Made by a program: the position numbers and the translations under genes
Notes under the pieces: model-generated
What the model was told of the DNA's origin: nothing
Database searches by the model: none
What the model saw: the letters and a program-made list of their open reading frames with translations, nothing else
Shown: positions 6,051-60,085 of the stretch, piece by piece
Layout of the letters: every line of letters starts with the position of its first letter
How positions within the stretch are numbered: position 1 is the first letter of the stretch
Source of the DNA: Raja brachyura
Lineage: Eukaryota
Direction: 5' to 3'
Assembly (NCBI GenBank): GCA_963514005.1
Contig: OY740797.1
Span: 24,986,001 to 25,050,000, forward strand
DNA length: 64,000 nucleotides

Positions 6051-6374
6051 CGTGTACAACAATCCTCGTGCCATTGCCTTTGGAACTGCTTCCTTTCCCG
6101 TCTCTCACACTGCAATAATAGATCCCGGAGTCACGGAAGCCCACGTCTAACATATGTAATTCGGCAAATCCCTTCGGGACATTGTTCATTATCATCCTCC
6201 TGTTTGGGGTGGGAGCCAAAGTCTCTTCTTGGCCCTCTTTCTTCCAGTATACACCCAGCAGTGCTTTCTGACCGAAGTTTGGGAAAGCACAGTATAAGGA
6301 TACATTTTCACCTTTCACCTTCGTTACCTTATCGGGAATCTGACGCACACTGAACGAGAAGGGCCGGTCAGTTA
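6051..6374 (-). CDS. Gene A: Ig V-set (VJ-type) exon, NKp30/NCR3-like receptor
   Basis: Acceptor ttctgacAG, donor G|GTGAGT, 324 nt, phase 1-1. Canonical Cys (SLYC), Trp (VYW), DSGIYYC and J-like KGNGTRIVV. Confidence 0.9.
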
Positions 6375-12570: not shown

Positions 12571-13878
12571 TAGGGTCTAATTAGGAACAGTCAACATGGA
12601 TTTATGCCTGGAAGGTCATGTTTGACAAATCTTCTTGATTTTTTTGAAGAGGTTACTAGGGAAATTGACGAGGGTAAAGCAGTGGATGTTGTCTATATGG
12701 ACTTCAGTAAGGCCTTTGACAAGGTTCCTCATGGAAGGTTGGTTAAGAAGGTTCAACTGTTGGGTATAAATGCAGGAATAGCAAGATGGATTCAACAGTG
12801 GCTGAATGGGAGAAGCCAGAGAGTAATGGTGGATGGCTGTTTGTCAGGTTGGAGGCAGGTGACTAGTGGGGTGCCTCAGGGATCTGTGTTGGGTCCTTTG
12901 TTGTTTGTCATGTACATCAATGATCTGGATGAAGGGGTGGTAAATTGGATTAGTAAGTATGCAGATGATACCAAGATAGGGGGTGTTGTGGATAATGAAG
13001 AGGATTTCCAAAGTCTACAGAGTGATTTAGGCCAGTTGGAAAAATGGGCTGAAAGATGGCAGATGGAGTTTAATGCTGATAAATGTGAGGTGCTACACCT
13101 TGGCAGGACAAATCAAAATAGGACGTACATGGTAAACGGTAGGGAATTGAAGAATACAGTTGAACAGAGGGATCTGGGAATAACCGTGCATAGTTCCTTG
13201 AAGGTGGAATCTCATATAGATAGGGTGGTAAAGAAAGCTTTTGGTATGCTAGCCTTTATAAATCAGAGCATTGAGTATAGAAGCTGGGATGTAATGTTAA
13301 AATTGTACAAGGCGTTGGTGAGACCAAATCTGGAGTATGGTGTGCAGTTTTGGTCACCCAATTATAGGAAGGATGTCAACAAAATAGAGAGGGTACAGAG
13401 GAGATTTACTAGAATGTTGCCTGGGTTTCAACAGCTAAGTTACAGAGATAGGTTAAATAAGTTAGGTCTTTATTCTCTGGAGCGCAGAAGGTTAAGGGGG
13501 GACTTGATAGAGGTCTTTAAAATGATGAGAGGGATAGACAGAGTTAATGTGGACAAGCTTTTCCCTTTGAGAATAGGGAAGATTCAAACACGAGGACATG
13601 ACTTTAGAATTAAGGGACAGAGGTTTAGGGGTAACATGAGGGGGAACTTCTTTACTCAGAGAGTGGTAACGGTGTGGAATGAGCTTCCAGTGGAAGTGGT
13701 GGCGGCAGGTTCGTTGGTAACATTTAAAAATAAATTGGATAGGCATATGGATGAGAAGGGTATGGAGGGTTATGGTATGAGTGCAGGCAGGTGGGACTAA
13801 GGGAAAAAAGTTGTTCGGCACGGACTTGAAGGGCCGAGATGGCCTGTTTCCGTGCTGTAATTGTTATATCGTTATACC
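12571..13878 (+). mobile_element. Young 5'-truncated CR1 LINE with an uninterrupted 398-aa RT/C-terminal ORF
   Basis: ORF 12604-13800 has [30 protein letters not shown] and YADD; 3' UTR followed by a GTTATAT tail. Confidence 0.95.
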
Positions 13879-19075: not shown

Positions 19076-19375
19076 TTATTCTGGACGGATGGGGCAAAGC
19101 GACATCCGATGCTGCTCAGAAGACGCCGCGCAACAAAATAAACGTTACACGCCTATTTCCCTTCCTCTTCGATCTTAATCAACCCAACATAACGGTGCAC
19201 TGTCAAAGAGACGGAAATAAGAACTTCCTGAGAAGAGATAGCAGAACATTCCGGGTAAGGGGCGCAACGGTTGTTGCTGCATGTGAGCGTGCTGACAGTA
19301 GGTTTACTTCCACATTCCACAAACTTGCGGGTTAAACTTTTTTAAATGAAACCGGTGACGAACCTATCATATACT
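19076..19375 (+). pseudogene. Decayed Ig V exon paralogous to gene B V
   Basis: GKATSDAAQK..INVT..NITVHCQRDGNKNFLRRDSR..KLAG*TFLNETGDEPIIY|GTGAG aligns with gene B V. Acceptor AG, both Cys and the Trp are lost; TAA at 19333. Confidence 0.8.
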
Positions 19376-22707: not shown

Positions 22708-22762
22708 ATGTTCCTGAAAGTGTCACCTTGGACGATGTATTTCCTTGGAATTTTGATTGCGG
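22708..22762 (+). CDS. Gene B exon 1: signal peptide (MFLKVSPWTMYFLGILIA)
   Basis: ATG 22708, 55 nt, donor G|GTACAC, phase 1. Confidence 0.8.
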
Positions 22763-23055
22763 GTACACTACGGCTTCTATTGCTTTTTATTTATGGGTCT
22801 TCAAATTACGCAGATATTATAGTTGTACCTTGCAATGTCATGCCGAATTGTCCGTAAAGTCATTGCTGTTGTATGAGTTCTAGAAAGGAGTGCAATTTAC
22901 GAAACCTTGGCGCGGACACAAAAAGCGGGCATAATACTTCGGTTCAATTATTTGTAAATATTTGGTCTGCGTGCAATAAGGTTTTTGCCAGCAGTGTTAA
23001 ATTTCCATTGCTGTATATCAATGGCTAAACTGGATTGTGCACCATCTATTGACAG

Positions 23056-23367
23056 CTGCTGAGAACAGGTCGGGCAAGACGATATCGAATGTTTTACAGA
23101 AGCCGGTGGTCAGTGGCATAAACTTTACCTGTCGGTGTTCCTTCCCCTTCACTGTAAACGTGTCAAACCTAACGGTTTTCTGGTGGAAAGATGGAAATAG
23201 AGGCTTCCTGAAAGAAGATAGCAGGAAAATCTTCTTGATAAGGGCAGGAGGCGCCTACCTTCACCTGCTGAATGTCACGGTCTCGGACGCCGGAACATAC
23301 TATTGTCTTGCAAAACAAGCGGGCCGAACGGTTGCGGATGGAACAGGAGAACAACTGATCGTATATG
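23056..23367 (+). CDS. Gene B exon 2: Ig V-set (VJ-type) domain
   Basis: ttgacAG acceptor, G|GTGAG donor, 312 nt. TCRC, VFWWKDG, DAGTYYC and J-like DGTGEQLIV. Confidence 0.92.
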
Positions 23368-24131
23368 GTGAGCGTACGGTACTTTAGTTGTAGCTCGAAT
23401 TTGAATTTTGCTTCACAAACGTCTTTAATCCAGAATACAAATGTGCAAAACGTTGGGAAATTATTCTAGATTGATTCGATTTAAAATATAGGTCAGAGGG
23501 CATGACAGCAATGATATTTGAGTTGATGTATATTGAAGGTAGTGAGTATAAGATGAATACATACAACGGTTTCAATTTGACACTGAACGCCGAGGCGGGG
23601 ATCCTCCTGAATGAATGAATGAATAGCCTTTATTGTCTCCTGATGTTTTCCTAATGATAATGTTATCAACATATAATTCTGTGAATTGAAAGAGCGGGGT
23701 TTTTACTTCCACAAAATAATTGAAATATAAAGTATATTTCTTGCGCCGAATTAGAGAATCAAGAAATTTTAGTCAAAGCATTCTCTGTAAGCCAGTCCAA
23801 GTCTGCAACTGTTTATGACTGATTATATTGGGAAGTTGAAATATTCACAACAGTACCGCGCCTTTGAAAAGTCGAAACTTGAAAGTTGATTCGCGCGTTT
23901 TAGCACAAGAGACAAGTGTGCAAATTAGTGGTCTTTTCGCAAATTAAATGTCAAGGGAATGCATGTCAAGGGAAGGTGGGGGGGGGGGGGGGGGGGGTCA
24001 ATCGCGATGAAGAACTCCTTTATCTGGGCTCCCGATTTAAAATTTATGATTAAATTAAGTAGCGTTGGAAAAAATGCTATTGGATGATGTAATCGACCTT
24101 TCCCCTTTTAATTATATTCCTCTTTACTTAG

Positions 24132-24437
24132 CTGTCCCTTCTCCTCTGAAGATTGTGGCTGTTCGGTCTAGAAATGCTGGGACTCATTTCCTGAAAATCC
24201 AGTGCAGAACGGCTGCCTTTTACCCGAAAGAATTTAATCTCACCTGGCATAGAAATGGCTCTGTCATCCAATCTGGATTTCGGCATGAACAACATTCAAC
24301 GGCAGACGGATTGTATGAAGTTATCAGCTCTTTGGATGAGAAACGGGCAGTCAAAGAAGGAACCATTTACACATGTAAAATTATTCACCGTTCTATGCTA
24401 ACTCCAGCAACTGCCAACTACACGGTTCCTCATGAAG
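24132..24437 (+). CDS. Gene B exon 3: Ig C1-set domain
   Basis: ttacttAG acceptor, G|GTAAC donor, 306 nt. C1 motifs IQC..AFYP....LTW, DGLY and YTCKIIH. Confidence 0.92.
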
Positions 24438-25196
24438 GTAACGTGTCCTACGCATAGAATAATGGATAATCCACTGAATAATAATATTAATAGTAAAAAT
24501 AAAATATAAGGATTTTTAAACGACCGTATTTTCTGCTGCAAATGTATTTTCCTAGAACTTGTGCAATGTTCCTATTTTCTGCCAGCGTAGACGGACGCTG
24601 TACAATCCACCCAGTCTATGTTGCCTCCCAGAAGAATTCCATCAATACAGTTCCCGCAATAGATCGCGCACCTGAAACCTATTCCATTTCACGTCATCTG
24701 TAAGTCCACTCTGATGCCCCCACAAACATCACCCCTTCCCGAGGAATAATGTAAAAATAATCAATTCACTCACTAAGCAGTTCCTTGGTAAAATCTCAGA
24801 GAATGTGCAATGTCCATGCAGACAGTCCCCGAAGCCAGGCCTGAGCTCGGATACCTGGAGATGTGAATCGATAGCACTATTGCTGTACCATTAACTCGGT
24901 GAATTTTTTTATTTTTGTTCGTTTATGGCTGAAATGGGTAATCAATTGCAACTCAGACACAGAAACTACCTAAAAATAATCCGCGCAAATACCGAAATAT
25001 GAAGTACTACTACTCCAATTTGTCCGTGGTCTCACTCTGATGCCACGGATGCCCAGAACAGAAAGGTCAGTGTGCGAATAGGAAAGGGATAAAGGGATTC
25101 TAAATAGTTAGCAACCGGGAAATCCAATAAGCCTTGGAAGACCTCGTACAAGTTTTCAGCGTGACGGGGGGGGGGGGGGGGGGGGGTTCACGTCCA

Positions 25197-26840
25197 CTAA
25201 AGAATTAGAGCAGGATGGAAGTTAGTGGTGTAATTAATGAAGGCCATGAGTTCTGCACGACTGCAGGAACTAGCTCCAGCGTAGTTGTCGATGTATTCGA
25301 GAAAGTGTTCGGGAGTAACGCCAGCGCATGTTTTGAACAAGCACTGCACCATGTACCCAACAAAATGGTAACCAGTAGCTGTGGCTGATGTCAGTGTCCA
25401 TGCTACAACTTTAACTTGGAGAAAGTGAGAGGAGTCAAAACAAATGTTGTTGAGGGTGACGACAAATTCCTCAAGGAAGAAACCGAGGTCGTGAGATGTT
25501 CCAACTCCCAACCAGTCTAATCCTACTACAGATGTCAGAGGTCATGGGGAGAAGGCAGGAGAATGGGGCTCGGAGGGAGAGATAGATCAGCCATGATTTA
25601 ATGGCGGAGTAGACATGATGGGCCGAATTGCCTAATTCTCTTATCCTTATGACCTTAATACCCCTCCCGCTCCCGCCCATGCACAGCTCCTCCCAACCCC
25701 TCCTCTCTGAAGCCCTATGGCCCCCACGCCCGACCCTGCTTCTTCACCTCTGCTCGACCCTAACCTCAGCCCTCACCCCTGTCATGTTTTCAACACCCCC
25801 TAACCTCCTTTGCGATACAGAACGGCCAGTCCTCGACAATTAGTGCTACATCCTACACCCGTGCAGAACTTAACTTCACCACTAATTTCCATCCTGCCCT
25901 CAAATTTACCTCAACTATCTTTGATACCGCCCTATCCTTCCTTTCTCTCTCTCACTCCATTCACCCCACCAGCCGCCGCAATCCTGAACATCATCGTCGG
26001 ACATTTCCGTCGCCTCCAACCTGATCCCATTATTAATCACATATTTACATCTCCATGCCTTTCCGCCTTTTGCAGACTGTTCCTCCACAACTATTGTTCA
26101 TTCATCCCTTTAAACCCAGACCACCCCATCCTGAGGTAACTTTCTCTACAACTGCAGGAGATGTGACACTTGTCCCTGTACCTTCTTCCTCGCCTCTATG
26201 CACGGACTCCGACAATCTTTCCAGCTTGGACAGTAGTTCACATGCACCTTCTCTAATCTTATCTACTGCATACGTTGGTCTGGATGCGGGGTCCTGTACA
26301 ATAGTGTGGAAAGGAGTGGATTCTGCAGCCATTTAGCTGAGCATTCTCTGACCTACTGGATCTCCCAGTATTTTAATTCCCCTTTTCATTCCTACACTGA
26401 ACTTTCTGTCTGAGGACCAGCCTTGCACAGAGTAGCGAAAGCAAATTCGACGAACAGCACCTCGTATTTCACTTTAATAGCAGACAAGCCAGCGGCATGA
26501 ACGCTGGATTCTCTCATTTTAGTAATGCCCATAAGCACTCACTTCCCTCTCCACTCCCTCGCCCCCCCCCCCCCCCCCCCCCCCGCACTCCCATTTGCCC
26601 CCTTTCTCCTCTAAATATGGATTTACCAGTCCCACAATTCGCAACGATGTATCCTTCTTGGGATAACGTCGGCCTATCAGGGAACCTCCCTGCGTGGGGC
26701 CATATCGTGCTAGTCCCGATTTCTCCTGTTTTTTTCTTGCTTCCGCCCCCACCCCACAATCAGTTTGAAGAAGTGTCCCGACACAAAACGTCACCTCGCT
26801 ATTTTCTCCAATGATGCTGCCTGACACGCTGAGTTACGCC
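25197..26840. mobile_element. Penelope-like element fragments in a gene B intron (both orientations, CR1 tail between)
   Basis: YIDN..G..SCSRAELMAFINYTTNFHPAL on the minus strand; NFHPALKF and GIY-YIG remnants on the plus strand. Confidence 0.7.
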
Positions 26841-27244
26841 AGCATTTTCAGTTTATTTCTGAGAACTAACTTGTTGGCTCTTGCATCAATTGGGGACTGT
26901 TAGTGGGGAGAAGACGTCTGTAATGATTCACTCCTGGCCAGCGTCAGTACCATTTATATCTCCTTCAAGATTTGGTGAACAGAATATATCCAAATTAATG
27001 TATTATGTTCCACAATGTTCTGTTTCCCAACGGTCAATATCCCACAAGGTTCAATTAAGATCTATTTATTTCACTCGTAATCGCGCCATAAATTGAAATT
27101 GTTGGCTCTTTGCCGCATTCCACGCGGTTCTGGTGAAATCTGTTGAGTGAACATTTGAAATATCTTGCTTTGTTTTCCGCAAAGTCTACTTTGAAATAAC
27201 TGAATTAAATATAAACATTTGGTCATCGGTTTACCCTCCCACAG

Positions 27245-27346
27245 CTGTCGAGGGTTTATCAGCTTCTCTAATCGCTGGAAGTATCCGAGGTGCAGTGTTA
27301 ATTTTAATGTTCATCGTTATCGTCGTGATGACAATTATATATAGAG
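27245..27346 (+). CDS. Gene B exon 4: transmembrane (AVEGLSASLIAGSIRGAVLILMFIVIVVMTIIYR)
   Basis: ccctccacAG acceptor, G|GTATGT donor, 102 nt, phase 1-1, long hydrophobic stretch containing one Arg. Confidence 0.88.
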
Positions 27347-27669
27347 GTATGTTTCTCATCCATTTTTTAAGTATCATCCCAGTATAATATTATAATATAA
27401 TAGTATTGATAATTACATGATTATCTTGATAATAAAGGAAATGAAACATTTGCACGGGCAAAAATTATGATTATAATAAACAGCACCGACTTAACGAAGA
27501 TATTCAATTTTGCATGTGACTAATGTTTGATTATCACATATTTTGAATTCTATGTTTTAATTCGACACATTATCACATAGCAGCCAGCATTTAATTGTAC
27601 CTATTGGTCAAGATCTGAACATCTGTGAATGTTGTGATAAATGTTGTTTCATTGGTTGATTGATACAGC

Positions 27670-27910
27670 AGACAAACAGGCATTTTAACCCATCGATTCT
27701 ACGCCAGCCATCGATCATCCGTTCACACTAGGTCTACGTTAACCTACTTTCGCATCCACTCAATACACAGTGGGGGCAATTTATAGAGGACAGTTAACCC
27801 ACAAATCCGCACATTCTTGGGATGTGGGTGTATACTGGAGCAACGGATGAAACCCACGTGGTCACAGGGAGAAAATGCATCATACTCCGCGTTTACCTGT
27901 TGCACCACTG
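27670..27910 (-). mobile_element. V-SINE copy (diverged)
   Basis: CCCACGTGGTCACAGGGAGAA V-domain segment and CR1-like tail. Confidence 0.65.
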
Positions 27911-28092
27911 TGTCGTCCAACAGTTTGGGAAAAGCGTGGCAGAAACAACGTGGTTTAAGCCTTCATACATATGTAGTGAAGCCGTATGTAGTGAAATTCT
28001 ACCGTGCAATTATCACATGATATTACGTTCTTTGCGTGCTCAAAAACACCATGTCGCACGGCCATTGATCGCTATTATTTTTTTCCGAGCAG

Positions 28093-28136
28093 GTGCAAAG
28101 AAGCGTACAGTAAATACAAATCGGACACAAAGTTGG
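28093..28136 (+). CDS. Gene B exon 5: juxtamembrane cytoplasmic exon (GAKKRTVNTNRTQSW)
   Basis: T-rich tract then gcAG acceptor, G|GTAAGG donor. In frame with the TM exon and supplies a basic stop-transfer KKR. Confidence 0.7.
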
Positions 28137-28399
28137 GTAAGGCTAATTTAATAAATGACTATTCCATTTGTGAAAGTAGAGACAGGATTGTGCTTTTGTT
28201 GAAACCAATCCGTTTTAATAAGGACCACGTCTTATTCTGTTTGAACGTATGCCCAATCCGTGAACTTCACCCACTGTATCACAAAGGAGGACATAAAGAA
28301 CAATACAAGATGCATTTACAGGAGTTCGCATTTCTTATAAATGTCATATATATTGTTTACACCAGGTGTGGTGAAAGGAATATTTTCATTGTACCTTAC

Positions 28400-29830
28400 T
28401 GTTTCTTGTCCAGCCACAGGCGAGATTCCGGAGTACTGGAGAGTGGCCATGTTGTTCATTTGTTTAAGAAGGGAAGTAGAGGGAATCCAAGTCTCAACCA
28501 GTTGGATCTAAATATAGGTCGGTTGAACACACGTTAGTGGTTAGGAACCGATTGGAAAGACTTCTTCAAGAGAGGATCTACTGACATTGGAAAGAGAATG
28601 GACGATTAGCGATAGCCAGCACGACCTAACACGTTTTACTGATTGTTCTGAACAGATGACAAAGGAGATTGATGCCGACAGGGCAGTAGCTGCTACAAAC
28701 TCGAATTTTAGGAAAGCTTAAGATAAAGTCCCTCTTGACATATCTTGATCTTGATATCAAAAGATCAAGATCACGATATACAGGATATTCTGTAACTTGG
28801 TGATATTAATTCAGAACTGGCGTCTTCAGAGCGACAGAGGTTTGTCGGATGATCTGCCTGAAGGTCTGCGATCAGTGGAATTCCACACGGACCTCTGTTA
28901 TTTGTGATATATATAAATGACGTAGACATAAATCGAGATGGATTGTTGAGTAAATTTGCAGAACAACAGAACAGGAGGAGTTGCAGACAGCGAGGAGGGC
29001 TGTCGGAAGATACAGAGGGTTATAGATCATCGATAGAAGTGGGTGGAGAAATGGCAGGCGGAGCATGATGGAGTATAACCCGAGCAGTCTGAGCTGTTGC
29101 ACTTTTGGATGGCGCATGTAAGGATAATGTCAAGATGTTAAAGTGAATTGATGTGCAGGGAGGTCATGGAGTCCAAGTTCATAGCTCACTGAGGGCAGCA
29201 TGAAGAGGAAGACTAGTAAAGATGGCGAATTATGTGTTTGCCTTAATTGCTAGGGAATTGAATACAAGAGTAAAGAAACCATGATACAGCTCTTTAGTTA
29301 AGCCCCATTAGTAGTTTTCCGTGCGGTTCTGGTCGTCTAATTATAGAAAGCCTATGGGGAGGATGCAGAAGAGGTTTACCAGATGCGCTTGGATTAGAGA
29401 GGTGCAAGTGAATGAAAGGGTTGTATAAACTTGGATTGTTTTCACTGAAAATTCGGAGAATTAGGGCAGCATTAGTACAGTAAAAGGTATAGATAGGGTA
29501 GACCGTCAGAACCTTTTCCACAGAATAGAAATGCCCAATGCTAGAGGGCATAGCTATAAGGTGTGTGGGAGAAAGTTTGGTGGATGTATACGGGGTAGGT
29601 TCTTTACATGGCGATTGTTGTTTGCCTGGAAGGCATTACCAGGTGCGGTGGTGGAGGCAGACACGATAGTGGCCTTTAAGAGGCGTTTAGATGGACACAT
29701 GCTCCTGCAATGAATAAGAGGATATGGATCATATACAGATAGATGAGATCAGTTTAACATGGCATCGTGTTCAGCACAAACATTTTGGGCTGAAGGGTGC
29801 GTTCCTATGCTGTACCTGACTATGTTCTAT
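28400..29830 (+). mobile_element. Old degenerate CR1 LINE (intronic)
   Basis: VVHLFKKG, SKFA and GRFFT..AW..LP remnants and a CR1-like 3' UTR. Confidence 0.75.
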
Positions 29831-30034
29831 GTTATGTGCAGTTATCATTTTGATCTGTCCAGTTGGGACTGTTTGCCCCACAGTCGATTAGACTCAGGAA
29901 ATTGGTCTTCGTGCGAGAAGTCATTCGAGACAAAACAAGAAATAATTGTCCCTCGTATATTCCTGCCAGCGCATTCCGAGCGAAAGCTTCATTTGTAGTA
30001 TAACTAATCTTAAAATAAGTTAATTAACTTACAG

Positions 30035-30150
30035 AAAGAAGATGAGAACGTTAGCCGCAATTCGATGCACGCCCATTGGGATCTTGTCCGCAGCAAAGAA
30101 TAAGGGAAACCTGAAGAGCACGTTGAGAGCCCTGCGTATGCAAAGCTAAA
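30035..30150 (+). other. Gene B candidate cytoplasmic exon with an in-frame stop
   Basis: cttacAG acceptor, AA|GTACGT donor. Phase-0 reading is KEDENVSRNSMHAHWDLVRSKE*GKPEEHVESPAYAKL (TAA at 30101). Confidence 0.45.
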
Positions 30151-30257
30151 GTACGTTTCACGCTTTTACTCCACACATCTGAGAATACAGATAGGTCTTA
30201 CTCGGAGAAATGTGTCGTTTTCTTGTCCAATTAACAATAGCAAACATTTGTGCACAG

Positions 30258-30389
30258 AACGCAATTATGGCTGCTGCTGATAACGAACTGACATACGCTT
30301 CCTTGAACACGTCAAGCTCCAAAAATAAATTGAAACGGCAACACGAAGAAATAAGTGTAATATATAGCGGGGTGAAATATAACAACTAA
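30258..30389 (+). CDS. Gene B terminal exon with tandem ITIMs (LTYASL, VIYSGV)
   Basis: Reads NAIMAAADNELTYASLNTSSSKNKLKRQHEEISVIYSGVKYNN*. In frame from exon 5 via the AG at 30256-57, or from the TM exon via the AG at 30239-40. Confidence 0.75.
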   Translation, partial: NAIMAAADNELTYASLNTSSSKNKLKRQHEEISVIYSGVKYNN

Positions 30390-36759: not shown

Positions 36760-39700
36760 AGGGAGGGAGGGGGAGACGGGAGGGGAGAGAGGGAGAGCGA
36801 GAGGAGGGGGAAAGGGGAGAGAGGGCGGAGAGAGAGGAGGGGGAGAGAGAGAGGGGGAGAGAGCGGGGAGGGGAGGCGGAGGCAAGAGTGTAGCGGGGAG
36901 AGGAGAGGAGGTGGGGGGAGAGGATGGGGAGAGAGAAGAGGCGAGAGATGAGGGGAGAGAGAGGAGGGGGTGAGAGCGGGGAGGGGAGGCGGAGGCAAGA
37001 GTGTAGCGGGGAGAGGAGAGGAGGTGGGGGAGAGGATGGGGAGAGAGAAGAGGCGAGAGATGAGGGGAGAGAGAGGAGGGGGAGTGGGGGAAAAGAGAGG
37101 GGGCAAAGGGAAGGGGTAGGGAGTGGGGAGGGGGTTGGAGGAGGGCAGAGGGGGTTGGAGCGGAAAGAGGGTTGGAGGAGGGGAGAGGTGGGGTTGGAGG
37201 AGGGGAGAAGGAGGGTGGAGGAGGGGAGATGGGTGGGGCTGAGAGGGGAGAGGGAGGGAGGAGGAGAGGGGGAGATGGAGAGGGGGCGGAGTGGGGAGGG
37301 GAAGGGGAGGGGGACAGGGGAGAAGGGAGAAAGGGGGTGGGGAGGGGGAGGGGGAGCGGGAAGGGGGAGGGGGAGAGGGGAGGGAGGACGGAGGAGGAGA
37401 TGGGGAGAGGGTGAGGAGAGGGGAGATGGAGAGGGGGGAGAGAGGAGGGGAGAGGGGTGAGGAGAGGTGTGAGGAGAGAGGGGGAGGAGAGAGGGGGAGG
37501 AGAGAGGGGGAGGAGAGGGGGGAGAGGGGGGAGGACGGATGGAGATGGGGGAGAGATTGAGTAGGGGAGGAGATGGGGAAGGGAAAGAACGGGGAGGGGG
37601 GACGGGGAGAGAGGGGTAGGGGTGGAAAAGGTTGGGGGATGTGAGAGTGGAGGGGGAGAGATTGGAGGGGGAGAGAGAGGAGGGGGAGAGAGAAGGGGAG
37701 AGGGGTGGGAGGTGGAGAGAGATTGGAGGGGAGAGAAGAGGGAGAGAGTGGTGTGGGAGAGTGGAGGGGAGAGAGAAGGGGGAGATGGAGAAGGGGAGAG
37801 GGGTGAGGGGAGAGGTGTGAGGAGAGAGGGGAGGAGAGGGGAGAGATGGGGAGGATGACGGGTGAAGATTGGGGAGAGATTTGGGAGTGGAGGAGAATGG
37901 GAAGAAAGAGAGCGGTGGATTGGGAGAGGGGAGAGCGGGGAGGGGGGAAGGGGAGAGAGGGGTAGGGGTGGGAGAGGTAGGGGAGGGGATGTGAGAGTGG
38001 TGGGGGAGGGCTGGAGGGAGCGGCTGGGGAAGGGGAGGGAGGGATAGGAGGGAGGGAGAGGGGGGGAGGGAGAGATGGGTGGGGGTGGAAGGGGAAAGAG
38101 GGATGGGGAGAGTGGGGGAGGGAGGAGGAGGGGGAGGGAGGAGGAGGGGGAGGGAGTAGTGGAGGGAGAGAGGGAGGAGATGGGGAGAGTGGAGGGGGAG
38201 AGTGCAAGGGGAGCGAGAAAAGGGGGAGAGGGGGGTAGAGAAGGGAGAGCGAGAGAACGGGGTGGGGAGAGGCAGGGGGTGGAAGGAGGGGAGGGAGGGG
38301 GGAAAAGAGATTGGAGGGGAGAAAGAGATTAGAGGGAAAGATAGAGTAGAGGGGAGAGAGAGATTAGAGGGGAGAGAGGGAGTAGAGGGGAGAGAGAGAG
38401 TAGAGGGGGATGGAGGGGGCGAGAGAGGACAGGGTGAGGGAGGGGCGGGAGGAGGGGGTGAGAGTTGGAGGGGGGAGAGAAAAGGGTGGGGAGAGGTGGA
38501 GGGGGAGAGGTGGACGGGGGAGAAGAGGAGGGGGAGAGGTGGAGGGGAGGAGGGGAGGGTGGAGATGGGGAGGAGAGGGGAGGGTGGAGAGGGGAGGAAA
38601 ATAAGAGGTGGAGGGGGAGTGGAGGGGGGTAGAGGGGAGGGGGCAGAGTGGGGGAGAGGGAGGGAGAGAGGAGGGAGGAGAGAGGGTGGTAAAGGTGGGG
38701 GGGAGGGGGGAGGTGGAGAGAGATTGGAGGGTGAAAGGAGAAGGGGAGTGGAGGGGAGAGAGAAGAGGGGAGAGNNNNNNNNNNNNNNNNNNNNNNNNNN
38801 NNNNNNNNNNNNNNNNNNNNNNNNNNNNNNNNNNNNNNNNNNNNNNNNNNNNNNNNNNNNNNNNNNNNNNNNNNNNNNNNNNNNNNNNNNNNNNNNNNNN
38901 NNNNNNNNNNNNNNNNNNNNNNNNNNNNNNGAGAGACGGTGGGAAAGAAGTGGGGAGAGAAGGGGGAGAGAGAAGGGGAGAGCGGGAAAGGCATGGGGCA
39001 TAAGGGAGGGGGAGGGGGAGGAGGAGAGTAGAGGGGAGAGAGTAGTGGAGAGAGAGAGTAGAGGGGAGAGAGTGGAGAGGAGAGAGAGAGAGAGTAGAGT
39101 GGAGAGAGAGAGAGAGAGAGTGTAGAGGGGAGAGGGGGAGAGGGGGAGGGATGGGGAGAGAGGAGGGGGTGAGAGCGGGGAGGGGAGGCGGAGGCAAGAG
39201 TGTAGCGGGGAGAGGAGAGGAGGTGGGGGGAGAGGATGGGGAGAGAGAAGAGGCGAGAGATGAGGGGAGAGAGAGGAGGGGGAGTGGGGGAAAAGAGAGG
39301 GGGGCAAAGGGAAGGGGTAGGGAGTGGGGAGGGGGTTGGAGGAGGGCAGAGGGGGTTGGAGCGGAAAGAGGGTTGGAGGAGGGGAGAGGTGGGGTTGGAG
39401 GAGGGGAGAAGGAGGGTGGAGGAGGGGAGATGGCTGGGGCTGAGAGGGGAGAGGGAGGGAGGAGGAGAGGGGGAGATGGAGAGGGGGCGGAGTGGGGAGG
39501 GGAAGGGGAGGGGGAGATGGGAGAAGGGAGAAAGGGGGTGGGGAGGGGGAGGGGGGGCGGGAAGGCAGAGGGGGAGTAGAGGGCAGGGAGGACGGAGGAG
39601 GATATGGGGAGAGGGTGAGGAGAGGGGAGATGGAGAGGGGGGAGAGAGGAGGGGAGAGGGGTGAGGAGAGGTGTGAGGAGAGAGGGGGAGGAGAGAGGGG

Positions 39701-41480
39701 AGGAGAGGGGGGAGAGGGGGGAGGACGGGGGGAGAACGGATGGAGATGGGGGAGAGATTGAGTAGGGGAGGAGATGGGGAAGGGAAAGAACGGGGAGGGG
39801 GGACGGCGAGAGAGGGGTAGGGGTTGGAAAGGTTGGGGGGATGTGAGAGTGGAGGGGGAGAGATTGGAGGGGGAGAGAGAGGAGGGGGAGAGAGAAGGGG
39901 AGAGGGTGGGAGGTGGAGAGAGATTGGAGGGGAGAGGAGAGGGAGAGAGTGGTGTGTGAGAGTGGAGGGGAGAGAGAAGGGGGAGATGGAGAAGGGGAGA
40001 GGGGTGAGGAGAGAGGTGTGAGGAGAGAGGGGAGGAGAGGGGGGAGATGGGGAGGATGACGGGTGAAGATTGGGGAGAGATTTGGGAGTGGAGGAGAATG
40101 GGAAGAAAGAGAGCGGTGGATTGGGTGAGGGGAGAGCGGGGAGGGGGGAAGGGGAGAGAGGGGTAGGGGTGGGGGAGGTAGGGGAGGGGATGTGAGAGTG
40201 GTGGGGAGGGCTGGAGGGAGCGGCTGGGGAAGGGGAGGGAGGGATAGGAGGGAGGGAGAGGGGGGAGGGAGAGATGGGTGGGGGTGGAAGGGGAAAGAGG
40301 GATGGGGAGAGTGGGGGAGGGAGGAGGAGGGGGAGGGAGGAGGAGGGGGAGGGAGTTGTGGAGGGAGAGAGGGAGGAGATGGGGAGAGTGGAGGGGGAGA
40401 GTGCAAGGGGAGCGAGAAAAGGGGGAGAGGGGGGTAGAGAAGGGAGAGCGAGAGAACGGGGTGGGGAGAGGCAGGGGGTGGAAGGAGGGGAGGGAGGGGG
40501 GAAAAGAGATTGGAGGGGAGAAAGAGATTAGAGGGAAAGATAGAGTAGAGGGGAGAGAGAGATTAGAGGGGAGAGAGGGAGTAGAGGGGAGAGAGAGAGT
40601 AGAGGGGGATGGAGGGGGCGAGAGAGGACGGTGAGGGAGGGGCGGGAGGAGGGGGTGAGAGTTGGAGGGGGGAGAGAAAAGGGTGGGGAGAGGTGGAGGG
40701 GGAGAGGTGGACGGGAGAGAAGAGGAGGGGGAGAGGTGGAGGGGAGGAGGGGAGGGTGGAGATGGGGAGGAGAGGGGAGGGTGGAGAGGGGGAGGAAAAT
40801 AAGAGGTGGAGGGGGAGTGGAGGGGGGTAGAGAGGAGGGGGCAGAGTGGGGGAGGGGGAGGGAGAGAGGAGGGAAGAGAGTGTGGTAGAGGTGGGGGGGA
40901 GGGGGGAGGTGGAGAGAGATTGGAGGGTGAAAGGAGAAGGGGAGTGGAGGGGAGAGAAGAGGGGAGAGAGGAGGAAGAGAGAGGAGGGAGAGAGAGGAGG
41001 GAGAGAGAGGAGGGGGAGAGAGGAGGGGGAGAGAGAGGGGGAGAGAGAGGGGGAGAGAGAGAGGGAGAGAGAAGGGGGAGAGAGACGGTGGGAAAGAAGT
41101 GGGGGGAGAGAGAAGGGGGAGAGCGGGAAAGGCAGGGGGCATAAGGGAGGGGGAGGAGGAGAGTAGAGGGGAGAGAGTAGTGGAGAGAGAGAGTAGAGGG
41201 GAGAGAGTGGAGAGGAGAGAGAGAGAGTAGAGTGGAGAGAGAGAGAGTGTAGAGGGGAGAGGGGGAGAGTGGGAGGGATGGGGAGAGAGGAGGGGGTGAG
41301 TGAGGGAGGGGGGGTGAGAGGGGAAGGAGAGAGAAGAGGGGGAGTTGGAGGGTGAGAGAAGAGGAAGGGGAGAAGTGGAAGGGGGAGAAGAGGAGGGGGT
41401 GGAGAAGAGGGGAGGGTGGATGCTAGAAGGGATGGAGGGGCAGGGGGAGTGGAGGGAGGTGGAGAGGGAGGGGTAAATAG
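36760..41480 (+). repeat. G/A-rich polypurine low-complexity tract with ~2.2-kb internal duplication
   Basis: Almost entirely G/A on the + strand; marker motifs recur at an offset of about 2200 (e.g. AGTGCAAGGGGAGCGAG at ~38201 and ~40400). Confidence 0.95.
38775..38930. other. Assembly gap (156 N)
   Basis: Run of n characters. Confidence 1.
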
Positions 41481-41846
41481 GGAGGGGTGGTAGGCCAACT
41501 TGCTCTATTTGATCTTGCTTGCACGCCAGACCACGTGAAGGTTCCAATCTCCCACACCTGTCCCATTGTGATGGCATATGTAAATGAGATCCATTGTGAT
41601 TAGACATCTGTCAGATGGCTCTGACTCGTGCAGCTGTTTGATTTTAGTAGGCCCACCTGAAGGTTCCAATCTTCCAGCCCTGCCCCATTGTGATGTCATA
41701 TCATAGGTAAATTAGATCCATTGTGATTGGACGTCTGTGAGATGGCGCTGTGACACATGCAGCAGTTTGATTTTAATTTTTTTGGATTTTTTAACTAAAA
41801 AGGCAGGGAAATTAATAACCAAATGTTCTAATTTTCAAAACAAAAT

Positions 41847-53131: not shown

Positions 53132-56063
53132 TATTTTATTGTCATTACACATAAGTGCAACGAGATTTGGTTTGCAACTTCGAGATTTCGGTTTGCAACC
53201 CCGAGAACAAGGTTTGTAAAAACGAACATTTGACCAGTAACATCAACACAGACTAAAGTGCGAGGCCGGGGGAGGCAGTCCATGGGGGTGTGGGGTCCTC
53301 AGCAGGACCGGTTCAGAGCCGCTATAGCTCTGGGAATGAAGCTGTTCCTGAGTCTGGTAGTTCGAACAGTCCATTACAAGGGTGAGAGGAGTCTTTATGT
53401 ATGCTGACGGCCTTCCTGAGGCAACGTTTGTGGTAGATGCCCTCCAAGGCTGGTAGCTTAGTCCCAATAATCTGTTACGCTCTGTGGACAACGCGCTGAA
53501 GAGCTCTGCTCTCCGCCTCCGTGCAGCTGAGATACCACACAGAGATGCCATACGTTAGTATGCTCTCTGTGGTGCAGCGGTAGAAGGTCGTCAGCAGCTG
53601 TTGGGGCAGACCAGTCCGTTTTTATGTTCTTAGGAAGAACAGTCATTGCTGTGCCTTTTTGACCAGTGCAGCGGTGTTGGTGGACCATGTAGGGCATCTG
53701 AGATGTGAGTGCCCAGAAACTTGAAGCTGGACACTCTCTGCACACTGTGTCCGTAGATGGAGATTGGGGCATATTCCCCATTCTGTGACCTCCTGAAGTC
53801 GATAATCAGCTCCTTGGTCTTGGAGGTGTTTAGAGACAAGTTGTTCCGTGAGCACCAGTCCGCCAGGTTCTGCACCTCCGCTCTATAGTTTGTTTCATCA
53901 CCGTTGGTGATCAGCCCGATCACCGTTGTGTCGTCTGCAAACTTGACAATGTTGTCAAATGCAGGGACACAGTCGTGGGTGAAGAGGGAGTAGAGTATGG
54001 GGCTCCGTACACAGCCCTGTGGTGTACCGGTGCTCAGGGTGATAGTGCAGGACAGGTGAGGCACCAGTCTCACTGCCTGTGGTCGCTCCGTCAGAAAATT
54101 CAGGATCCAATCACATATCAGTGAGCTGAGGACTAGCTGGTGGAGTTTGGTGGTGAGCTTGGTGGGGATGACCGTATTGAAGGCAGAGCTATAGTCAATG
54201 AAGAGCATCCTCACGTAGGTGCCCTGTTTTTCCAGGTGGGTCAGGACAGTGTGAAGAGCCACAGAGATGGCATCCTCTGTGGATCTATTTGCCCTGTATG
54301 CAAATGGATGAGAGTCCAATGATGCAGGGATGCTGGATTTGATGTGGGAGAGGACCAGCCTTTCAAAGCACTTCATTGGTATTGGAGTTAGGGCAACCGG
54401 GCGGTAGTCATTCAGGTTGGTGACTTTAGACTTTTTCGGCACCGGCACTATGGTAGCTGTCTTCAGGCACTTAGGGACCGTTGCCAGAGATAGAGACAGG
54501 TTGAAGATACTCGTAAATACCTCCGCCAGCTGTACAGCACAGTCCTTTAGTACCCTACCCTGGACTCCATCTGGGCCTGCAACCTTGCGTGGATTGATCC
54601 TACGCAGAGCGCACTGCAGCTCGTGGGTGCTCAGTGTTAAGGCCTGTCCCTCTGCCCTAGTCGGGGTTGTTCCTCTCCTGGTGGTGTTGCCAGTTTCAAA
54701 GCGGGCAAAGAATGTGTTTAATTCATTGACCAGTGTGATATCACTGTGGGGGCAGACGGGGCTGCTCTTGTAGTCAGTGATGTCGCTGACACCCTGCCAC
54801 ATGCTTCTGGTGTCCGCGGTGTTGAAGTGGTCTTCCACCCTTTGCCTGTGGATGTCTTTCACCTTTTTTATGCCTTTGTCCAGGTTTGACCTGGCAGCAC
54901 TGTAGACAGAAGTGTCCCTGGATTTAAAGGCAATTTTGCGTGCCCTTACCAGATTCTGAACGTCCTTGTTCATCCACGGTTTGCGGTTTGGGAACACGTT
55001 TATATCCTTGTCCACTGTGACAAACTCCACACAGCAGTTGATGTAGGAGAGCACAGTGGATGTGTACTCCTCCCAGTCTGCCTCTAGTAGCCTGTTGTGC
55101 AAACAGGGCCCAGTCGGTGCGATCAAAGCAGTCCTGGAGTTGTAGGGTGGCGTCCTCGGGCCATATTTTGACCGTCTTTACTCCCGAGGCAGCTACAACG
55201 GCCTACATTTAAGCAGCAGGTATTCCAGGTCTGGGGAACAGTAGCTCTCTACTGCAGTGTGGTTGGTGCACCAGTCCTTGTTGATATAGATGCAGAGCCC
55301 TCCGCCCTTGCTCTTACCAGAGTCCTTTGTTCTATCAGCACGATGCAGCGACCGATTGGTTAGGTCCACAGCCCCGTCGGGAACCAGCGCGCTGTGCCAG
55401 GTCTCTGTGAAGATCAGCACACGGCAGTCTTTCAGGGATCGCTGGGTGTTGATCCAGAGCCTCGCCTCATCCAGCTTGTTGGTAAGTGACCGGGCATTCG
55501 CGAGAAAGACACTTGGTAGTGATGGTCTTTGCGGGGCCCTCCGTAGCCTGTCCTGCACCCACGCTCGCCTTCCACGTTTCTGCTTCCTCTCCCGGCGCAT
55601 TCTCCGTATCCAACCCTCCGGGGTGGTGATCCAGGAGGCTGTTCTGCCAACCTCCATCGGGATTTTGGTGAGGGTACTGTAGTACTCACCAGCCAGTTTC
55701 TCGCAGCCACGTCAAATGTTGAGCAGTTCCATTCGGCTGCACGTGCGACCTGCCGGGATCACAGTGCAGGTACCGGATATCCCCGTCCTGGAGGTGAGTC
55801 CCTTAATGTGTTTTCGGGGGATACTGGGATTTCTAGGGATTCTAGGGGTTCGGAGGTGTTTACGTACCTTATTTCCACAGCAGCGTTCGGTACCGGGCTG
55901 CTCCGAATTGACTCGGACTGGGGAGCGCAAAGCCGCCGTGTCTGATTTTCCCGTCCTGGAGGTGAGTCCCTTACGGTGTTTTCGGGCGGTACTGGGAATT
56001 CTAGCGGGGTACTGGGGTATCTAGGGGTTGACTGGGACTGAGGAGCGCAAAGCCGCTGCGTCT
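53056..56063 (-). mobile_element. Rex1/Babar-like LINE (endonuclease start + RT, internally deleted) with (ATT)25 tail
   Basis: LANARSL, FTETW and GGGLCIYIN; 498-aa RT ORF with LFIDYSSAFNT, TGTPQGC and KFADDTT; AAT microsatellite at 53056-53130. Confidence 0.9.
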
Positions 56064-59599: not shown

Positions 59600-59764
59600 G
59601 TATTTCTCGATTTTTCTTTTGTTTTCATCTTCTTACTGACCTACACCCTCTGTGATCAACACCCTATATTGAACGCACATACACTTTCACGCATCTTTTA
59701 AAAGTACGATTAATTGTCTGTCCTCGTCTGTTATGGGATATTTTTTGATTTTCTTCTGCTACAG

Positions 59765-60085
59765 TGGCCGTTGATGCTCACTACCAAGTCGATCAATCTC
59801 CTTCGAGCCAACACGTGATCTTATATTCAAATACCACTCTCTATTGCATTATTGGACTATCGCAAAATAGTCCACCTGTGGAAATTTATTGGTGGAAACT
59901 TGGCGAACAGAACTTTCTGCAAGCAGCCTCTGACAGTAGGAAGATATTTGTTCGTTTTACACAAGGTGGAGCCTCCTTGCATCTATTGAATATCCATGCA
60001 GATGATGCTGGAGTCTATTACTGTGGAGTGGGAATACAGGGAAACGAGATTGTGAATGGATCTGGCTCCAGAATCAAAGTCTTCG
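59765..60085 (+). CDS. Gene C exon 2: Ig V-set (VJ-type) domain
   Basis: ctgctacAG acceptor, G|GTATGT donor, 321 nt. VDQSP, TLYC, IYWWK, DAGVYYC and J-like NGSGSRIKV. Confidence 0.92.

Follow-up and report, generated by a model that had tools for sequence, protein, structure and literature searches.

A germline-joined VJ-C1 transmembrane gene of Raja brachyura from a paired-receptor family of cartilaginous fish, with a conserved transmembrane arginine and a candidate tandem-ITIM tail

The gene described here lies at 22708-30389 on the forward strand of a 64,000-nucleotide (nt) window of Raja brachyura DNA (assembly GCA_963514005.1, contig OY740797.1, positions 24,986,001 to 25,050,000), in which all coordinates are counted from the first letter of the window. 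Its six exons encode, in order, a leader, a VJ-like immunoglobulin (Ig) domain, a C1-set domain, a transmembrane (TM) segment and a cytoplasmic tail, and the locus is very probably a genuine member of a multigene VJ-C1-TM family of cartilaginous fish. Judged by its sequence, it is a gene of the batoid lineage with a conserved TM arginine, in which the last ancestral exon carrying immunoreceptor tyrosine-based inhibitory motifs (ITIMs) is intact and phase-compatible with exon 5. The reading we favour, tentatively and at a little below an even chance, is that of a bifunctional receptor, whose arginine would pair with an adaptor having an acidic TM residue and an ITAM (immunoreceptor tyrosine-based activation motif), while its tandem ITIMs would recruit SHP phosphatases. 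Alternatively, the gene may have been caught between inhibitory and activating forms.

The first-pass annotation of this DNA had proposed six phase-compatible exons of 55, 312, 306, 102, 44 and 132 nt, and the same model was reproduced exactly, with borders, frames and lengths agreeing at every position when each exon was translated in its own frame. The exons sum to 951 nt, that is, 316 codons and a stop; the exon phases are 1, 1, 1, 1 and 0, and every internal border shows AG before and GT after the exon. Exon 1 (22708-22762, 55 nt) begins with ATG and encodes the leader MFLKVSPWTMYFLGILIA together with the first base of a split codon, followed by a GT donor. Exon 2 (23056-23367, 312 nt) supplies the end of the leader and the VJ-like Ig domain with the canonical Cys...W...YYC pattern, and exon 3 (24132-24437, 306 nt) the C1-set domain, which reads FYP...W...DGLYEV...YTCxxxH. 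The stalk and the TM helix are encoded by exon 4 (27245-27346, 102 nt), in which the arginine codon CGA occupies 27286-27288, and the basic juxtamembrane segment GAKKRTVNTNRTQSW by exon 5 (28093-28136, 44 nt), which ends in a strong donor (TGG followed by gtaagg). Exon 6 (30258-30389, 132 nt including TAA) is the terminal tail exon; its translation contains LTYASL and VIYSGV with their tyrosines 23 residues apart, as had been reported earlier. All of these exons lie on the forward strand, as does a decayed ITIM-repeat exon of 116 nt at 30035-30150, which has a TAA at 30101-30103.

The exons were used separately in searches and trees, and the structure prediction referred to below is that of the homologue P0165 of Pristis and not of the Raja gene itself. 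When ray proteins were used as queries in tblastn, the V exon was recovered with E=4e-44 and the C1 exon with E=4e-41. The leader of 18 residues is 72% identical to that of P0165, and since collinearity with this protein runs from the leader onward, the acceptor at 23055/23056 is supported. As a gene model, the proposed leader-VJ-C1-TM-tail chain of 316 residues is upheld, and the matches to ray proteins, shark tails and the Pfam C1-set profile go well beyond what chance would give.

The family was delineated by a search of the V exon against 1.84 billion representatives, followed by a cluster look-up and two further searches. Beneath many giant multi-Ig proteins, proteins of 250-450 residues match the whole V exon with 40-54% identity. 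These come from the sharks Heterodontus, Stegostoma, Chiloscyllium, Hemiscyllium, Scyliorhinus, Mustelus, Heptranchias, Cetorhinus and Rhincodon, the rays Pristis, Hemitrygon and Mobula, and the chimaera Callorhinchus, and they bear the automatic NCBI names SIRP-alpha-like, SIRP-beta-1-like, NCR3 ligand 1-like (B7H6-like), Ig lambda-1-like, tapasin-related-like or uncharacterized. When the exons were compared singly by BLAST, the ray proteins proved the nearest relatives for leader, V and C1, with identities to the respective Raja exons of 72, 66 and 64% for Pristis P0165, 67, 64 and 62% for Hemitrygon P0166, and 61, 57 and 63% for Mobula P0167. The V tree places the Raja gene in a ray clade with a support of 99 in the SH-like approximate likelihood-ratio test, and the C1 tree agrees with a support of 91; the ray clade is nested in a well-supported subfamily (support 100 in the V tree and 95 in the C1 tree). 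The search for homologues of the C1 exon returned no protein fragments from the same species within the length range covered.

On present evidence, the family behaves as paired receptors of putative inhibitory and activating types, and the gene, which had been presented earlier as a singular object, is instead one member of a large family of this kind spread across the cartilaginous fish. Members of the first class have an uncharged TM segment of the IAGCAGG type and a long tail of repeated LTYAAL...xVYAET units with up to four canonical ITIMs. Members of the second class have an arginine near the N-terminal end of the TM segment (LIYRS..., VFPRF..., ISRF..., WIVRG...) and a short tail devoid of ITIMs. 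Opposite TM and tail types occur on near-identical ectodomains, as evident from Stegostoma P0159 and P0163, whose V domains are identical, and from Heterodontus P0015 and P0018, which are 87% identical. Across the 29 rows of the C1 tree, a minimum of 7 changes in the state of the TM arginine is needed. This combination of TM and tail types resembles that of SIRP, KIR, LILR or ChIR-type paired receptors. In the annotated model of Stegostoma P0163 the TM arginine is accompanied by one LTYAAL, after which the tail diverges from that of P0159, and in the annotated model of Mustelus P0067 it occurs together with LAYASL; as both models combine a TM arginine with an ITIM, the co-occurrence proposed for the Raja gene has a precedent within the family.

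The assignment of the extracellular domains is clearer for exon 3 than for exon 2. Exon 3 scores 38.8 bits against the Pfam C1-set profile, well above the cut-off of 21, and conforms to the pattern FYP...W...YxCxVxH, which bears out the C1-set domain claimed for it in the first-pass annotation. The VJ domain claimed for exon 2 stands in part: a J-like G-x-G strand, DGTGEQLIVY, ends its V domain, and the Pfam profiles ig and Ig_3 are above cut-off, whereas V-set, at 22.9 bits, falls short of its cut-off of 26, and I-set, at 21.1, of its cut-off of 23.7. V-set matches are, in turn, precomputed for homologues of this exon. Only 55 residues separate the canonical cysteines, which makes for a short V domain, and the PDB entries that it matches best are I-set domains from titin and contactin. 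The PDB matches of the C1 exon include Ig CL/CH3, SIRP-gamma, UrIg2 and MHC-I alpha3.

The TM exon reads ...SLIAGSIRGAVLILMFIVIVVMTIIYR, with the core LIAGSIRGAV. The arginine of this core is common to three ray orthologues (SIRGAV in Raja, WIVRGAV in Pristis, DWIVRGSL in Mobula and Hemitrygon), and in the Raja gene and its ray orthologues alike a stretch of 18-19 apolar residues comes after the arginine motif, with a basic stop-transfer residue next in line. The same column of the TM segment is also arginine in Heterodontus P0018, and glycine or alanine in the uncharged paralogues. In a hydropathy scan, which gives a sequence-based estimate, every hydrophobic window of at least 19 residues includes an arginine, and in the best windows of 21-23 residues the arginine falls at positions 3-7. 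The AlphaFold 2 model of P0165 has a helix at 223-258, which contains R237. The first-pass annotation had named an arginine lying outside the membrane span as the finding that would speak against it; whichever span of 19 residues or more is chosen, the sequence puts the arginine within it or at its outer margin. As a separate observation, Hemitrygon P0166 and Mobula P0167 carry an aspartate four residues before the conserved arginine (AVDWIVRG), forming an i/i+4 acid-base pair that is absent from the Pristis orthologue and from the Raja gene.

The position of the arginine also bears on a purely inhibitory function, in which the 316-residue protein would be made, the arginine would snorkel at the outer interface without an adaptor, and signalling would proceed through the ITIMs alone. 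The hydrophobic run after the arginine measures 18 residues in the Raja gene, so that a minimal span could leave the arginine at its very edge, and the glycine or alanine of the uncharged paralogues is one base away from the CGA codon. We nevertheless consider this function quite unlikely. Eight small or apolar residues stand before the arginine, and in known adaptor-coupled receptors the arginine likewise occupies the 'top of TM' (PMC3422731). Moreover, the arginine is kept in three ray genera whose models have no signalling motif in the tail, and for this reason its conservation would be difficult to account for if no adaptor were involved.

Exon 6 aligns collinearly with the C-terminal ends of Heterodontus P0015 (residues 316-357) and Stegostoma P0159 (residues 409-445), and its stop falls at the same place, after VKYNN in Raja and VKNSN in P0015. 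Searched in a small database, it finds shark tails at E values of about 1e-7; the exon is open, and both of its ITIMs are canonical, with the form (S/I/V/L)xYxx(I/V/L). Exon 6 is evidently a genuine homologue of the ITIM exon that ends the tails of the family, ancestral and intact. The exon at 30035-30150 is also of family origin: tblastn with P0044 recovers it with E=4e-7, and it is collinear with residues 276-312 of P0158. Its ancestral LTYAAL has become SMHAHW, with the loss of the first tyrosine, and its second motif reads PAYAKL. Exon 5 aligns to AKRNSLNPTQ of P0158 and AQKKTIN of P0163, which are basic juxtamembrane segments; the matches being short, the support from homology for this exon is weak. 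Its donor is near-consensus, and by the 0/0 phase match exon 5 can join exon 6 when the decayed exon is skipped.

In the bifunctional receptor that we favour, the decayed exon would be skipped in the likeliest product, giving the 316-residue protein. The join of exon 5 to exon 6 is the step that would bring the arginine and the ITIMs into one chain. The arginine would then find its intramembrane partner in the acidic residue that an ITAM adaptor of the FcR-gamma or CD3-zeta type provides, and the tandem ITIMs, once phosphorylated, would recruit SHP-type phosphatases. The earlier suggestion that the gene combines activating and inhibitory features stands insofar as the TM arginine is conserved and the ITIM exon is ancestral; it is weakened by the ITIM-less models of the orthologues and by the decayed, stop-bearing exon between exons 5 and 6.

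Several observations weigh against a product that includes the ITIMs. The acceptor of exon 6 has a poor pyrimidine tract, a repeat element begins about 90 nt past the exon 6 stop, and the first AATAAA or ATTAAA follows only 1.45 kb downstream. Another AATAAA (28150-28155) stands 14 nt past the donor of exon 5, and read-through of that donor (28137-28155) would add VRLI and two stops, giving a tail that ends in ...QSWVRLI. The decay of the neighbouring ITIM-repeat exon suggests that constraint on the tail is relaxed, and as compared to the same shark tail exon 6 shows 51% identity and the decayed exon 37.5%; with exon 6 only slightly the better conserved, its intactness could be partly luck. 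A query of 6.35 kb matched genomic runs but no RNA run, which is a weak negative, as the query is mostly intron and a small spliced RNA could escape it. Among the aligned contigs, which were short, genomic and from three closely related organisms, no joints were seen at exon borders; the 40 differences displayed, out of 938, include none in exons 4-6, and the alignment is uninformative on constraint.

The same region can be read as that of an activating-only receptor, in which a short tail follows the arginine-bearing TM segment and the ITIM exon is a relic that is not translated. This we regard as possible, if on balance doubtful. Such a product could arise either by inclusion of the stop-bearing exon at 30035-30150 (...SW-KEDENV...SKE and a stop) or by ending after exon 5, where the AATAAA just mentioned is suitably placed. 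The decayed exon retains its AG and GT borders, and its stop lies about 47 nt before the donor. A stop at this distance is within the range that usually escapes nonsense-mediated decay. In all three of the closest ray orthologues, the models combine the TM arginine with short tails lacking ITIMs, and loss of ITIMs after gain of the TM charge is seen in P0163 as compared to P0159. Against this, exon 6 is open, with two canonical ITIMs and a stop that matches those of shark homologues, and the near-consensus donor of exon 5 is what is expected of an internal exon. The 3' ends also differ among the three ray models, and because of this disagreement the models are weak guides to the tail.

The two kinds of product need not come from different genes. 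Alternative 3' processing might make this one locus its own paired receptor, yielding a short-tailed activating isoform or a double-ITIM isoform, both with the arginine in the TM segment; we judge this unlikely, but it is open to test. The short form would be produced by inclusion of the stop-bearing cassette at 30035-30150 or by cleavage at the AATAAA after exon 5, and the ITIM form by skipping of the cassette. If such a switch operates, a cell could adjust whether its one VJ-C1 chain, shaped like an antigen receptor, gives a positive or a negative signal.

That the locus is an unexpressed or dying copy in a cluster of fast turnover, and hence a pseudogene in the making, is very unlikely in our estimate. 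The cluster does contain a dead V exon at 19093-19374, one tail exon of the gene (30035-30150) is already dead, and RNA support was not found with the mostly intronic 6.35-kb query, a weak negative as stated above. On the other side, all six coding exons are open, their splice sites are intact and the canonical Ig residues are present; the divergence from the ray orthologues, moreover, spares the structural core.

Further Ig exons are found in the surrounding window. The dead V exon (19093-19374, forward strand), at a distance of 3.3 kb upstream of exon 1, shares about 35% identity with the V exon of the Raja gene, has an in-frame stop and has lost canonical residues; it looks like the remnant of a tandem duplicate. 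An intact VJ-type exon at 6052-6354 on the reverse strand is best matched by P0161, a fused Hemiscyllium model, in its second V domain (45% identity, E=5e-23) and forms a long branch in the V tree; an accompanying C1 exon was not found in the window. A third exon, of the VJ type and of the same superfamily, at 59761-60084 on the forward strand, is 40% identical to the Raja V exon and falls, at 60-62% identity, in the starred clade of Mustelus P0067 and P0118; the remainder of its gene lies beyond the end of the window.

Repeats occur both in the gene and elsewhere in the window. The introns of the gene are full of very high-copy repeats (25000-27000, 27600-28000 and 28400-29900), with contig depths of 1e3 to 1e6 in all runs aligned, and introns 2 and 3 contain homopolymer runs of about 20-23 nt at 23978-23999, 25167-25189 and 26566-26585, of which two are poly-G and one is poly-C. 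A purine-rich low-complexity array of the GGAGGGGAGAGA type extends over about 4.7 kb (36766-41487), with periods of 13-14 and about 113 and a GC skew of up to 0.94, and is broken by an assembly gap (N run) at 38775-38930. Reverse-transcriptase-like open reading frames of 408 and 515 residues are located at 12574-13797 on the forward strand and 53633-55177 on the reverse strand, respectively.

Germline-joined VJ-C1 genes of cartilaginous fish are sought as relics of the precursors of antigen receptors (PMC12227049, PMC10751288). These two papers discuss UrIg, UrIg2 and NKp30, and make no mention of the larger VJ-C1-TM family. No published description of the family was found in the literature searched, which did not cover much of the relevant subscription literature; in the papers searched the family appears uncharacterised, and it seems to exist so far only as automatic annotations. 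Should the findings hold at family level, they point to a large undescribed set of germline-joined VJ-C1-TM genes, with a bearing on the kind of gene that preceded Ig and the T-cell receptor (TCR). The combination of arginine and ITIMs will in itself not surprise a specialist, since ChIR-AB and KIR2DL4 are known, and what gives the present locus its value is its bearing on the family, together with an isoform switch that can be tested. With a conserved TM arginine, an intact ancestral ITIM exon and a freshly decayed ITIM exon between them, it would represent a snapshot of the interconversion of inhibitory and activating receptors.

In comparison with known systems by PDB sequence, PDB profile and Foldseek searches, Ig light chains, UrIg2, SIRP-alpha/gamma and B7-H3/PD-L1 are matched about equally well, and none stands out. 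Ig light chains are the top Foldseek matches, and the family profile aligns with them over the whole V-C1 span (positions 27-223). The J-like G-x-G strand of the Raja gene is a further likeness to Ig light chains and the TCR. TCR chains carry a basic TM residue, as the Raja gene does. Unlike in these systems, the VJ unit is germline-joined in one exon, which on reading showed no recombination signal, its V domain is short (55 residues between the cysteines, as given above), and the chain has a tyrosine-motif tail of its own.

NKp30 and B7H6 share with the gene a non-rearranging domain of the VJ type, and some family members are automatically named B7H6-like. NKp30 has no C1 domain. An assignment to NKp30/B7H6 was rejected, as neither is among the best PDB matches of the V or the C1 exon. 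A B7-type ligand similar to B7H6, in place of a receptor, is the least probable reading that we considered, and an extremely unlikely one. It could draw on the name 'NCR3 ligand 1-like' given by NCBI to some members, on the alignment of the family profile with CD276 over the full V-C span, on the good structural match of PD-L1 and on the presence of another VJ exon 16 kb upstream. The dichotomy of charged TM segments and ITIM tails is, however, a signature of signalling receptors; Ig light chains, UrIg2 and SIRP score equal to or above the B7 proteins, and B7H6 does not occur in the best 60 PDB matches for either exon or for the family profile.

SIRP proteins of mammals and birds likewise combine a non-rearranging N-terminal domain of the VJ type with C1-set domains, and form pairs with either an ITIM tail (alpha) or a charged TM segment and a short tail (beta). 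The C1 exon matches SIRP-gamma at 4e-9 and SIRP-alpha at 5e-8, and the family profile reaches 96.7 bits on SIRP-alpha. The match, however, covers only the end of V and C1 (profile positions 89-215), and SIRP lies outside the best 60 PDB matches listed for the V exon. The TM residue of SIRP-beta is lysine, as compared to arginine in the Raja gene. SIRP has two C1 domains, whereas a single C1 exon is present in the gene and in the 64-kb window, and the family models are V-C1. An assignment to SIRP was rejected on account of the single C1 domain and the restriction of similarity to C1 and the end of V; the family nevertheless pairs in the SIRP manner.

UrIg and UrIg2 are, like the Raja gene, cartilaginous-fish proteins with a germline-joined VJ followed by C1-set domains, and UrIg2 is matched by the C1 exon at 2e-8, by the family profile at 106.5 bits and also in Foldseek. 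UrIg2 has a VJ domain plus nine domains of the C1 type ahead of its TM/cytoplasmic region, and its N-terminal domains are joined by disulfide links into homodimers; the word ITIM is absent from the paper that describes it (PMC12227049). An assignment to UrIg/UrIg2 was rejected, as the Raja gene has a single C1 exon, followed by the TM exon and a signalling tail.

Bifunctional receptors, which have a basic TM residue and ITIMs in one chain, are an established class, with chicken ChIR-AB and human KIR2DL4 as examples (PMC6760009, PMC3422731), and the arginine 'near the top' of the TM segment of KIR2DL4 pairs with FcR-gamma (PMC3422731). Their domains are of the C2/I type of the leukocyte receptor complex and not VJ-C1, and they have no sequence relationship to the Raja gene. 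The likeness therefore resides in the signalling architecture, that is, in a basic TM residue together with one or more cytoplasmic ITIMs, the co-occurrence of which in a single mRNA is, for the Raja gene, a prediction.

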